The notes under the pieces are model-generated. The model saw only the letters and a list, made by a program, of their open reading frames with translations. It did no database searches and was not told the DNA's origin. A DNA stretch of 64,000 bases, from contig NIVC01000815.1 in the NCBI GenBank assembly GCA_002269645.1, forward strand, positions 299,902 through 363,901. The letters are read 5' to 3'. The DNA is from Macrostomum lignano. Lineage: Eukaryota. Below are positions 42,160 to 47,592 of the stretch, one piece after another. A program made the translations under genes and the position numbers. Each line of letters begins with the position of its first letter. Within the stretch, counting starts at the first letter, position 1.

Positions 42160-42456
42160 CATACATGCGCAACCTCCAAAATTCGGTCGGCCGTGCGACT
42201 TAGTTTTAACAAAAATGCGACGTAGTTTTTGGCCAAAAATGCGACTTGCATGTAAAAAAACCGTAAAGCAAAATTAACGCAAGTTTGGGTAAACGGCAGG
42301 AGTAACTATGACTCTCTTATTAAGCCAAAATGCTTCGTCAGCTACTTAGTACTACTACTAGGGTGTTTTTTGAGTGGGCATTTTTGCGACTTCCTTGGTT
42401 GGTCGCCAAATCGGTCGGCCGGATCGGCCGACTCGGCCGACTGTTGCGCATGTATG
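42160..42456 (+). mobile_element. MITE (hAT/P-type, 8-bp TSD) carrying a 28S rRNA target-site fragment, copy 1
   Basis: TIR catacatgcgcaac / gttgcgcatgtatg; TSD tttttact; 28S-like segment at 42287-42350. Confidence 0.92.
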
Positions 42457-44461
42457 TTTTTACTGCCTAGGACAATTCAATTTAAACTACTGAGCAATTT
42501 CTCACTTTTAGCAGGTTTCTATTCTTCCAATTTTAGGGTTCCTTGAAGGAATAAAAAGATGAATTTCAATTGAAAACTTTCTAAGTTATAAGTTAATAAC
42601 TGAAAGGCTCACAAATCACAAGCAAGGTTTTTGCTCTCTCAGTTTTTGGTCTTCTATTTATACTGGTTAAAAAATCACTTTAAAACAAATTTACTTGTAG
42701 AATATTATTTGGAAAACACTATAGTTGAACAAAATTGGGGCAGGAATTTAAATATAATTTCTAAGAAACTTTTCTTAGAAATTTTCTAAGGCAATTTTCT
42801 AAGAAACAGCAAATTAGAATTGTAGCAAAACAGTTTTATACTATAAAAAGAATATAAAGAACATATTATATTGCATTTACTGTGAAAAATGCACTACTTC
42901 ATTAGAAGAAATTGACAAAGAAAAAGGAGTTTGGAATTGATGTAAAAATACAAAAAGAAATGCTAGGACCCTCTTATCTTAACAAATAAGACTAGAAGTA
43001 ATACATAAGATACATATACTAGGGCCTACTAAAACCACCTAGGCTAGAATACATTGCCAGAAATGCTACTAGAATGACCAAAACTGCTACCATAAATGTA
43101 ACTATTAATAAGAACTAGAAAAAGTAGCCATATTCTAGAAATATAATTTGCTAAACATGAATGCATACATTGAAGTATAGGCTTACCTAGACCTATGACA
43201 GCTTTAATGGCATTAGTAAAATATTTATAAAAAAGGGAAAGCCCTAAGACAACTTGGTATTGGTGGCAGCAAGGATGCTAACCAATTTGGCAATAGAGAT
43301 TCACTATGGATAAATTCAGCAAAGTATTTAAAGTATAAAGTAGTATAAACTATTTATCTAAGCATAAGTCTGAGTATTGGTCTAAAGATTATTCTGAGTA
43401 TTAAATTCTCATAGGTAGCATTCTCACTGTTATTTTGGTAGCATTCTTACTGTTATTCTAGTAGCTTTCTTATTATTTTCTGGCCTAAGCAGTTTAGGGT
43501 CTACCTAGTATAAAATGGTTAGCATGGTTGTAACACTCGAGGACACTCGCACTGTCATAGCCTTCCAAAAATGACATTAAATGACACTTATCTCTACTGT
43601 CACCAGCACGACACTGACATGCGACACTGCCCTACGACACTGGCCTGGACTGTTGCCAGCATGACACTGCCCTACGATACTAGCCTGGACTGTCACCAGC
43701 ACGACACTGATATGCAACACTGCCCTATGACACTGGCCTGGACTGTCAGTGGCACGACACTGACATGCGACACTGCCCTATGACACTAGCCTAGACTACT
43801 ACCAGTATAACACTGACATACAACACTGCCCTAAGACACTCATCTAATACTCATCCAACACTCATTTGACACTTATCCGACATTCATCCAACACTTATGA
43901 CACTCATCAGACACTGCCTAACACTCATCCAACACTGCCCAATACTCATCCAACACTGCCCGACACTCATCTGACACTGCCGAAATTTATCCAACATTGC
44001 CTGACACTCATCTGACACCCATCTGACACTCATAGTCTGAAGGAAAAGTCAACAACTAAAAGAAAGAATAAATCGGCTGATAACGATAAGGTCAGCAGTA
44101 AAAACACTGCCTACTGGATTGTCTATTTTCAAAATCCAAAATGGCAAGTGGCTTTGGTTAGCCACAGCCAGACCCAATTTTCAAACAGTTGTGGCACCAA
44201 GGGTCAGCAGGAATACTCTGTGAGAGATGAAGTACGAGTTTGAGTAGCCAAAGGTGGTAACTCAAAGGCAGCCCTGCACGAAGCCACAATTTTAAGGGCC
44301 TATACTCCACTAAGGGAACAATCGGAAGTTGCCTTACAGTGCTATAGGCAATAGCCACTAGTACCAACCATCAACTTGGCAAGTAGGTGCACTTGTTACC
44401 CCTCTTTGCAGCAAGACCTTTTGAGTTTGTGTGCCAAAATAGAGAAAAACATGCAGATGCA

Positions 44462-44758
44462 CATACATGCGCAACAGTCGGCCGAGTCGGCCGATCCGGC
44501 CGACCGATTTGGCGGCCAACCAAAGAAGTCGCAAAAATGCCCACCTAAAAGAACACTAAGTAGTAGTACTAAGTAGCTGACGAGGCATTTTGTTTTTATA
44601 AGACAGTCATAGTTACTCCTGCCGTTTACCCATAGTTGCGTTAATTTTGCTTTTGGGTTTTTTTACATGTAAGTCGCATTTTTGGCCAATAACTACGTCG
44701 CATTTTTGTTAAAACTAAGTCGCACGGCCGACCGAATTTTGGAGGTTGCGCATATATG
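44462..44758 (-). mobile_element. Same MITE family, copy 2
   Basis: TSD cagatgca on both sides; reverse orientation. Confidence 0.92.
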
Positions 44759-45924
44759 CAGATGCATGACAAAAAGTGTCACACTAAACATAGTCTGACT
44801 GCAAGCTACAAAGCTGAGCCGGAGAAGACTGCAGAGATCTTGCAATTGCAAAAACAACCTGAGAAGTTGCGCTTGTCGGCGGCCACCAACAGACAAAGCA
44901 CAGAAAAGATACTAGACAAGTATAAATGGAGCATCGAGATGCTCAAGACTGAGTGTCGCATCCTAAAGAAGTATTCACTGATGCCGTACTGGACAACTTG
45001 AAATCTAAATGTTGTCAAAGATAGCAAAAAAGTCATGGCTACAATCTCTCAGTCGCAGTCCAGAGATAACACTACTAGATTGCATGAGGCTACAAAAGTG
45101 CTGGAGAGTGCAGCAGTCTGCAGCATCATCCCAAATAGCAATAGTGCTGCAAATGATGTCATTGCTACAGAGCAGTGGTCTGTTTAAGTTGGCAAGGATC
45201 TTCAACCAAGGCTTGGGTCAGTTATGCTAACCTGAATGCAGATGTCAAAATTCTAGCCAGTAGCCTTGCCACGGCAAAAGGAGCTTTTCTAGGCAATTCC
45301 CAGAAAACAAACAAGAATGGAAAGAAGGGTCGACAGAAGTCTAATACCATAGCATTGGACAGAGGTCTGCAAGTTCTCTTCTAGGCATGTTTCACACCCA
45401 AGGAAATGGCCAAAATGTCTTACCAAGGAAGAGCCATCAAAGACAGCACCAACAGACTAGCTGCCAATTAACATCAAAGAACAGCCATAGAATCTTATCT
45501 AGATGCAATGGGACTGAGAAGCATTGGTCTACGCAGAATTCCATATCTGTACAGTCACATGTTGGAAGCTGTGAGAAAGAAGATGAACATTGGTGACAAC
45601 AATCAGTGATGGCGGCGAGAAGGCAGGTGATGGCGGCGATAAGGCATGTGATGGCAGCGATGAGGAAGATGACACTAGCAACAAGGCTGACATGGAAACT
45701 TTATGAAGTTTTCTAAAATGCAGTGACAGTGTATTAAGTGACCTAAATGTCTATTTGTGACCCAACATCTTTTTGTAAGATACTTAGTGAATAAATCCAC
45801 AATTTGCTTAATACATAGATTAAGCAACTTACTTCTTTGGATACAAAATTCATTTGCTACTTCTTGATTAGCTTTGCTACACGAGTTTCAGGCAGTGTTG
45901 GATGAGTGTTGGGCAATGTTGGAT

Positions 45925-46237
45925 CATACATGTGCAACAGTTGGTCGATCTGACTGACCGATTTGGCGGCCAACCAAGGAAGTCACAAAAATGCTAACCC
46001 AAAAAATACCTAAGTTGTAGTACTAAGTAGCTGATGAAGCATTTTGACTTAATACGACAGTCATAGTTACTCCTGCCATTTACCTAAAGTTGTATTAATT
46101 TTGCATTAGGGTTTTTTTTACATTTAAGTTGCATTTTCGGCCAAAAAATATGTCGCATTTTTGGCCAAAAACTATGTTGCATTTTTGTTAAAACTAAGTC
46201 GCATGGCTGACCAAATTTTGGAGGTTGTGCATGTATG
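45925..46237 (-). mobile_element. Same MITE family, copy 3 (more diverged)
   Basis: TSD tgttggat on both sides. Confidence 0.9.
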
Positions 46238-47298
46238 TGTTGGATGAGTGTTGGATGAGTGTCAGGCAGTGTTGGATGAGTGTTAGACGAATGTGGGATG
46301 AGATGAGTGTCAGATCAGTGTCAGACAAGTGTCGGATGAGTGTCAGATAAGTGTTGGGCAGTGTCAGATGAGTGTTGGGCAATATTGGATAAGCATTAGA
46401 CGAGTATTGGAGGAGTGTCGGGCAGTGTAGGATGAGTATAGGATAAGTATCAGACAAGTGTCAGATGAGTGTCAGACAAGTGTTGGATGACTAGTATCAT
46501 TAGGTGGTGTCGTTAGGCAGTGTCATTTTAGCCAAAAGTGGCAGTGCTAACAACTGTCATATTTTAAGTGTCAGTCATTATTGGTTTGTAAATTAGAAAG
46601 AAAGTTGTACCTTAAGTGTAAAGTAGCTTGGACACTAATTTTTAAAGAAAATATTCTTTAAAAATTATAAGAGTTTCACTAAACTTTAAAGTAACTGTCT
46701 TTGCTAAAAACTATTATTCTTTTTTTTACTTTTGTTTAAAATTTTCCAGCGTAAAAACAACCTTTTGGACTATGAAAAGTAGAACTTGAGTGCGCATACA
46801 CTACATGGCATATAACCATGTTAAATGCATGTAAAAGTCAAATCCTGTCTCTGATTCTGCATTAAACAGCTTCTTTGCATACGCATACAATGGAGTGCGC
46901 ACACACCTTCTTTAAGAGCACACAAGTAGGCTCCTTTTCAGTACACAAGTGCGCACAAATTTGATAAGCGCATACAAACGCATAACAACTTTTGTGCAAG
47001 AATTCCATCCTGGCAAAGTCTATAATAAGGTAGATTGTTTAATTGCTTTCAAGAAACATATTTTGAAATTTCAAGGTTTACTGATATTGTTTATACAATA
47101 AAAATTATTAGCACAAAATATGACTAATATTTGTGTGTTCTTTGTAAGCTTATCTTATAAAGTATAGATTTAAAATTAAATGAGAATCCAATACTAACTA
47201 GATAAGTAGGCTAGGCTAGCTAATAATAATTTTATTTTTAATATAACTAACCCAACTATTCATTAATCATTCAATGAAGTATTTCGAACTAATCTGAT

Positions 47299-47592
47299 CA
47301 TATATGCGCAACCTCCAAAATTCGGTCGGCCATGCAACTTAGGCCTAGTTTTAACAAAAATGCAACATAGTTTTTGGCCAAAAATGCAACTTACATATAA
47401 AAAAACCCTAATGCAAAATTAACGCAACTTTGGATAAACGGCAGGAGTAACTATGACTGTCTTATTAAGTCAAAATGCCTCATCAGCTACTTAGTATTAC
47501 TACTTTGGTATTTTTTAGGTAGGCATTTTTGCGACTTCCTTGGTTGGCCGCCAAATTGGTCAGCCGGATTGGCCGACTGTTGCGCATGTATG
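47299..47592 (+). mobile_element. Same MITE family, copy 4
   Basis: TSD aatctgat on both sides. Confidence 0.92.

Follow-up and report, generated by a model that had tools for sequence, protein, structure and literature searches.

A cluster of four short repeats in the model flatworm Macrostomum lignano raises the question of how a piece of 28S ribosomal RNA (rRNA) sequence, from the stretch that holds the sites of R2, Pokey and I-PpoI, came to lie inside a DNA transposon, and whether it still serves there as a target. The repeats lie in a 64,000-nt stretch of contig NIVC01000815.1 (assembly GCA_002269645.1, approximately positions 299,902-363,901), which we call the window. All family-level results below refer to four copies in 75 kb of one genome, comprising the window and the next 11 kb of the contig. 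An earlier note, made from the letters of the window alone, had proposed that these repeats are MITEs (miniature inverted-repeat transposable elements) carrying the target site itself. Our analysis shows that they are an apparently undescribed family of non-autonomous DNA transposons carrying a piece of 28S sequence, probably captured from host ribosomal DNA (rDNA), and that the cleavage site within this piece has been lost.

Four insertions of one miniature element

The copies, designated c1 to c4, and their subterminal repeats are as follows (TIR, terminal inverted repeat; TSD, target-site duplication).

42160-42456, plus strand: MITE c1, 297 bp; TIRs CATACATGCGCAAC and GTTGCGCATGTATG; TSD TTTTTACT at 42152-42159 and 42457-42464
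44462-44758, minus strand: MITE c2, 297 bp, 93% identical to c1; TSD CAGATGCA at 44454-44461 and 44759-44766
45925-46237, minus strand: MITE c3, 313 bp, CpG-poor and with one additional 24-bp unit of the subterminal repeat; TSD TGTTGGAT at 45917-45924 and 46238-46245
47299-47592, plus strand: MITE c4, 294 bp; TSD AATCTGAT at 47291-47298 and 47593-47600
42194-42245, plus strand: left arm of c1, tandem array of the 24-bp subterminal repeat TGCGACGTAGTTTTTGGCCAAAAA, 2.2 copies
44670-44724: equivalent 24-bp repeat array in c2
46128-46187: equivalent 24-bp repeat array in c3

The earlier description of four elements of about 300 bp with perfect 8-bp TSDs, spanning 42160-47592, proved exact to the base. 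Each copy has a duplication of its own, and the flanks of the four are unrelated to one another. When up to two mismatches were allowed, the 14-bp TIR CATACATGCGCAAC occurred at exactly eight sites in the window, forming four inverted pairs, against 0.41 sites in shuffled sequence; all eight ends carry zero or one mismatch. The window and the 11 kb of contig that follow it contain no further copies and no solo TIRs. Pairwise identity among the copies is 79-93%. Copy c3 interrupts a minisatellite, and removal of the element together with one TSD restores the array unit GTTGGATGAGTG. This is the only empty-site evidence in the examined DNA, as no paralogous empty site for any of the copies is present within the window. 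The four elements are thus independent insertions of a single MITE family that has been mobile: they are shorter than 800 bp and non-coding, they end in TIRs, and they are flanked by a TSD of fixed length at independent sites, as the definition of a MITE has it.

No coding capacity was detected in the elements, all frames being interrupted by stops and devoid of protein-family content, and a concatenated six-frame peptide query returned 0 matches from a set of 5.8 billion proteins. Searches for the MITE in prokaryote genomes and viral contigs likewise gave 0 matches. The RNA fold of c1 scores z = -5.2 relative to shuffled sequence, as expected for a TIR-bearing element. TCGGCCG motifs lie near both ends, along with a subterminal motif TGCGACTT, and the 24-bp repeats and TCGGCCG motifs may be binding sites for a transposase. 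The copies differ in length only through the extra subterminal unit of c3, 6 bp inserted in c4, and a 9-bp repeat unit that distinguishes c1/c2 from c3/c4.

The length of the TSD is compatible with the hAT superfamily or with the P-element superfamily, which is marked by duplications of 7-8 bp and by a THAP/P-type transposase encoded by the autonomous partner. Elements of the hAT superfamily have TIRs starting with YARNG and TSDs that tend toward nTnnnnAn. The TIR described here begins with CATAC, and none of the four TSDs has both T at position 2 and A at position 7. Membership of piggyBac, the superfamily of Pokey, was considered and rejected: it calls for a TTAA duplication and CCC...GGG termini, neither of which is seen in the TSDs (TTTTTACT, CAGATGCA, TGTTGGAT and AATCTGAT) or in the TIR, which begins CATACATG.

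At least two subfamilies are represented, c1/c2, which are CpG-rich and carry an extra 9-bp TCGGCCGAC unit, and c3/c4. All four copies fall inside 5.4 kb, with none in the remaining approximately 70 kb examined. Because the copies belong to at least two subfamilies, this clustering reflects a region that accepts transposable elements (TEs), not simple local hopping. CpG counts are 22 in c1, 21 in c2, 7 in c3 and 10 in c4. CpG-context transitions account for 19 of the 55 variable columns, and private changes of CpG to TpG or CpA number 14 in c3 and c4 together versus 0 in c1 and c2. This strong CpG decay suggests that CpGs are hypermutable in a flatworm genome, where TEs may be methylated. The intactness of the TSDs was considered as a clock and dropped: private non-CpG divergence is 0.7-3%, so four intact TSDs are unremarkable (P≈0.2).

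A 28S rRNA fragment in the element interior

Each copy contains a segment related to 28S rRNA. The fractions below give the ungapped identity of its 64-nt core to the conserved eukaryotic 28S 64-mer.

42270-42350, plus strand: 28S-derived segment of c1, approximately 81 nt, element positions 111-191; core 42287-42350, 53/64
44568-44648, minus strand: 28S-derived segment of c2; core 44568-44631, 54/64; local match to Rfam LSU_rRNA_eukarya, 23.3 bits, E=0.017
46022-46102, minus strand: 28S-derived segment of c3; core 46022-46085, 48/64
47415-47495, plus strand: 28S-derived segment of c4; core 47432-47495, 51/64; local match to the Rfam large-subunit (LSU) model, 9.1 bits

The count of 53/64 for c1 (42287-42350) given in the earlier note was reproduced exactly, its 28S reference string agrees with Rfam's LSU_rRNA_eukarya consensus at approximately 2244-2310, and the same core is indeed present in all four copies, its source being the stretch of 28S in which the R2, Pokey and I-PpoI sites lie. 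Homology extends over approximately 81 nt, from about -51 to +30 around the R2 nick, and covers the 3' part of helix 68 (H68), H69, and the start of H71. Weaker similarity had also been noted for about 25 nt upstream of the core; local alignment bears out that such similarity exists but limits it to approximately 17 nt (AAATT-AACGCAAG).

Several lines of evidence show that this resemblance reflects common descent. The binomial probability of at least 53 identities in 64 positions is 4e-22. The 28S 33-mer GGGTAAACGGCGGGAGTAACTATGACTCTCTTA, searched with up to three mismatches, matches c1, c2 and c4 only, as does the downstream 28S 23-mer AAATGCCTCGTCATCTAATTAGT, and in each case 0 of 100 dinucleotide shuffles produced a match. 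Local alignment of the elements to real 28S gave scores of 59-92, compared with 19±2 (maximum 31) for dinucleotide-shuffled elements; the 28S reference used was built by joining the 28S sequence on either side of an insertion in metagenome contig L002, described below. A chance or convergent resemblance could point to the low Rfam scores, 9-23 bits against a gathering score of 50. Yet two blocks stand in the right order and spacing, with 53-54/64 ungapped identities in the best copies, and chance is ruled out by the probability of ~4e-22, the shuffles, and alignment z-scores above 15, leaving it a negligible prospect. In permissive scans, the local LSU matches reached 20.1, 23.3 and 9.1 bits, well short of the gathering score of 50 (RF02543). 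LSU_rRNA_eukarya, the only Rfam family that aligns to the core, does so at approximately 2214-2312. The core is homologous to eukaryotic 28S rRNA at H69-H71, and it is a decayed fragment of 28S, not an rRNA gene.

The four copies share states that are derived relative to 28S, namely the change of G-25 to A, CAGCTACTTAGTAC in place of CATCTAATTAGTGAC, and a rearranged block in place of TTAAGGTAGCC. The block reads TTATTAAG(C/T)C in c1, c3 and c4 and is changed further in c2. Since the boundaries of the fragment are also identical in all four, it was acquired once, before the sampled copies diverged, and the core has a single origin. It shows no extra conservation relative to the arms, with variable columns among the four copies making up 17.5% of the core, 16.2% of the left arm and 23.7% of the right arm.

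A scan of metagenomes with a MITE-specific 26-mer returned two contigs, neither of which contains the MITE; both hold real 28S with a reverse-transcriptase-bearing insertion at the canonical R2 site. In these contigs (L002 1584-4810 and L003 6452-9680; OMLO01003472.1, Ga0126337_10003471) the 28S of another organism is interrupted by 3.17 kb exactly at TTAAGG/TAGCC, where the slash marks the cut. The insertion contains a reverse-transcriptase fragment (Pfam RVT_1, E=3e-12) and has an 11-bp target duplication (TGACTCTCTTA) at its 5' junction, and it is a canonical, probably degenerate, R2-type insertion. The interrupted 28S unit also carries the G-25 to A change, together with other 28S substitutions.

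The R2, I-PpoI and Pokey site and the fate of the fragment

The mismatches between core and 28S are unevenly placed. Of the 10-11 mismatches, six form one block lying on the R2/I-PpoI/Pokey site, where CTCTCTTAAGG/TAGCC of 28S has become CTCTCTTATTAAGCC in the MITE and the site itself has gone from TTAAGG/TAGCC to TTATTAAGYC. In the R2 element R2Bm, target recognition involves two motifs, RUM (A-31WWWGCNNNA-22) and RASIN (T-6TNANNT+1), whose spacing tolerates growth by one base only (Wilkinson et al., PMC10499050). By these rules RUM is intact in all four copies (AACGGCAGGA in c1, c2 and c4, and AATGGCAGGA in c3), a fit to the consensus at least equal to that of wild-type 28S. The in-register RASIN reads TTATTAA, so that A-3 and T+1 are lost and position +1 is A, a replacement that abolished R2Bm cleavage in vitro (PMC10499050). 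At no offset in any of the four copies does TTNANNT occur.

None of the four copies has a nested R2-like or piggyBac-like insertion. I-PpoI recognizes the 15-bp site CTCTCTTAAGGTAGC. Past base eight this site is disrupted: c1 (CTCTCTTATTAAGCC) differs at six of the seven remaining positions, and c2 to c4 have further changes. TTAA is still present in the core, which is trivial by itself, and the additional downstream preferences of Pokey are preserved only in part. The core therefore no longer constitutes a target for R2, I-PpoI or Pokey, as the cleavage site is gone. The proposal that the MITEs carry the target site itself accordingly fails on the mismatch block, the missing RASIN and the broken I-PpoI site, and the suggested look for R2-like or piggyBac-like insertions within the copies came back empty.

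These results bear directly on the idea that R2-type or other rDNA-site-specific proteins bind to the dispersed 28S module, which would either titrate them away from the rDNA or provide insertion sites elsewhere. All four copies retain an intact RUM and match 28S at 30-32/33 positions immediately upstream of the nick, and R2 is present in Platyhelminthes, including lineages that have lost target specificity (PMC5035012). Yet the absence of RASIN and of any insertion contradicts a landing pad for R2Bm-type recognition, the core is no better conserved than the arms, and the examined DNA gives no sign of R2 in M. lignano, while the R2Bm rules may not transfer to the R2 clades of flatworms. We therefore consider a decoy or landing pad very unlikely. 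A decoy that binds without cutting might be read into the good preservation of the upstream half of the core, an unevenness that is marginally unusual at about p = 0.05 by a rough estimate.

The fragment had also been suggested to be the relic of an rDNA-targeting DNA transposon which, inserting at this 28S site as Pokey does, mobilized the flanking 28S sequence and left the MITE as its descendant. In favor of this, the fragment stems from an insertion hot spot of Pokey, R2 and I-PpoI, and the rearranged block (TTATTAAGCC) may be described as TTA duplicated and GTAG deleted across the nick, which resembles a scar of break repair. However, the 28S piece runs through the site without interruption and sits inside the element (111-191), over 100 bp away from each TIR; the TSDs, 8 bp in length, are not TTAA and bear no relation to 28S; the TIRs are not piggyBac-like; and all four insertions are in non-rDNA sequence. 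Such a descent is accordingly very improbable. The footprint or repair-scar reading of the block itself is not distinguishable from coincidence and is offered as a remark only; the chance of one complex mutation falling within approximately 10 nt of the site in an 81-nt fragment is roughly 1-in-8.

At the RNA level, the core does not maintain the rRNA helices. A C-to-G change in the H69 stem of c2, c3 and c4 is uncompensated, and the 3' strand of H71 has been replaced. Transcribed copies, especially antisense ones, might nevertheless yield Piwi-interacting RNAs (piRNAs), small interfering RNAs, or a guide RNA complementary to H69-H71 of 28S; the copies occur in both orientations, the 33-nt match to 28S is near-perfect, and an active piRNA pathway is indicated for M. 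lignano in one published account (PMC4604429). Against a small-RNA source, permissive Rfam scans found no small nucleolar RNA or guide-RNA family on the MITEs, C/D and H/ACA features are absent, and there is no conservation signal among the four copies; we hold it to be very doubtful. The landing-pad, decoy and guide-RNA ideas are all speculation. Nor does it seem at all likely that the module has been kept as useful, whether as an uncleavable binding decoy for R2-type proteins (RUM intact, cleavage site destroyed) or as a small-RNA template matching H69, which, if true, would have a class II transposon interfering in the interplay between rDNA parasites and their host.

The explanation that we consider probable is that the four independent MITE insertions go back to one founder that captured a 28S fragment, which has since been carried as neutral cargo. 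The founder would have been a non-autonomous member of a cut-and-paste family with 8-bp TSDs that took up approximately 81 nt of 28S rDNA into its interior, either from host 28S rDNA or from an already damaged rDNA pseudocopy. With hundreds of copies, rDNA would be a likely donor. Uptake would most likely have occurred through filler-DNA capture or template switching in gap repair, as the deletion derivative formed, and the fragment would since have decayed as passive cargo along with the rest of the element. Filler capture by template switching in gap repair is a standard route by which foreign internal segments enter deletion derivatives of DNA transposons. Modules derived from rDNA are recognized in TEs and have been ascribed to modular reshuffling, mostly of no benefit to the TE (review PMC10946416). 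What we infer here is how the fragment was captured, which sequence donated it, and that it is neutral cargo.

Some points weigh against this explanation. The sample consists of no more than four copies, all within 75 kb of a single genome, and the donor rDNA is assumed. The 33 nt upstream of the cut, which include RUM, are strikingly closer to 28S than is the rest of the fragment; this unevenness could hint at constraint, with p≈0.05 after window choice as a rough estimate. In addition, the indels fall exactly on the cleavage site, which a neutral model must treat as coincidence at the roughly 1-in-8 chance given above. That the captured piece should be the famous R2 site is less surprising than it appears and reflects ascertainment bias, because without the host rDNA only universally conserved rRNA stretches are recognizable, and the R2 stretch is the best known of these. 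The finding would gain greater significance only if the core were constrained genome-wide or used by R2-type elements, of which the examined copies give no indication. At a practical level, dispersed 28S-like copies can confuse rRNA read filtering, estimates of rDNA copy number, and searches for R2 target sites in M. lignano.

Genomic setting and comparison with known elements

The MITE cluster occupies an AT-rich, gene-free spacer (approximately 35-43% GC) between two inverted paralogous blocks of CCCH/WWE (PARP12-like) genes. These and the other features of the surroundings are listed here.

33800-39700, minus strand: one arm of a large inverted duplication with CCCH zinc-finger/WWE (PARP12-like) genes
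56800-64000, plus strand: the other arm of this duplication, the two being 76-97% identical
62387-63970: open reading frame (ORF) 100% identical to BOX15_Mlig025379g2
43540-44033 and 45883-46530: pair of arrays of 11/21-bp units in inverted orientation (ACACTCATCCA... and its complement) around approximately 1.85 kb of non-coding DNA
40794-40863, minus strand: degenerate sequence resembling a tRNA, with an Rfam tRNA score of 34.4 bits that exceeds the gathering score

Within the CCCH/WWE duplication, minisatellite arrays interrupt the coding regions or fuse with them, and the ORF content of the window consists in large part of translated tandem repeats. Copies c2 and c3 lie inside the structure bounded by the inverted 11/21-bp arrays, which resembles an older element, of foldback type or non-autonomous, that has taken in nested insertions. 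No transposase was found in the window among open frames of at least 90 codons, nor inside this structure, and a search for homologues of the ORF adjoining c1 found none. The tRNA-like sequence, whose T-arm is broken by a 3-nt deletion and which received no ARAGORN call, adjoins a CCCH-type ORF and is probably a tRNA pseudogene or the head of a short interspersed nuclear element (SINE).

In the literature that we searched, no paper describes a class II MITE that carries part of the 28S coding region, and none contains the exact TIR and core strings, in agreement with the earlier note, whose author knew of no MITE with this cargo. The family is probably unannotated so far, because the published annotation of repeats in Mlig_3_7 left out those that were short or unclassified.

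A comparison with known systems shows both likenesses and clear disparities. One is Pokey with its derivative mPok (piggyBac superfamily, Daphnia, PMC3849761), a class II element with MITE derivatives that is tied to this same 28S stretch and contains rDNA-derived sequence. Unlike the family described here, Pokey inserts into TTAA of 28S and produces TTAA TSDs, and its rDNA-derived part consists of intergenic spacer (IGS) repeats in the 5' non-coding region (PMC3849761). The MITE, in contrast, has 8-bp TSDs at non-rDNA sites, unrelated TIRs, and an internal fragment of the 28S coding region. SINE28 of mammals is likewise a mobile non-autonomous element with a body from 28S rRNA, but it is a retroposon that originates from the 28S 3' end (PMC4994717). 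The MITE is a DNA transposon with TIRs and TSDs in which only an internal stretch of approximately 81 nt is 28S-derived, from H69-H71, roughly two-thirds into the LSU, and this sets it outside the definition of SINE28. Some fish R2 lineages carry in their 3' untranslated region an internalized 28S-like sequence from the neighborhood of the R2 site (PMC5035012). There R2 itself is the carrier, and its insertion site shifted in association with the acquisition, whereas here the carrier is an unrelated class II MITE without sign of target-site use.

In the manner of acquisition, parallels come from other DNA transposons. Ds-type abortive gap repair and Pack-MULEs are known cases in which non-autonomous DNA transposons capture host filler or transduplicated segments. 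As in those elements, an internal host segment lies between the arms, was acquired once, and was amplified with the family; the donor there is a protein-coding gene and here rDNA, and for the MITE the mechanism is the one proposed above. Modules from 5S rDNA are also found in non-autonomous TEs, namely SINE3/AmnSINE1 and the Cassandra terminal-repeat retrotransposons in miniature (TRIMs), where they supply a Pol III promoter of clear benefit (PMC10946416), while no such function is evident for the 28S piece. Taken together, the family is a clear instance of a class II element that took up and multiplied a piece of rDNA. With it, the short list of rDNA-derived TE modules, which includes 5S SINEs, Cassandra, SINE28, and the IGS repeats of Pokey, gains a case in which part of the 28S coding region lies in a DNA transposon.

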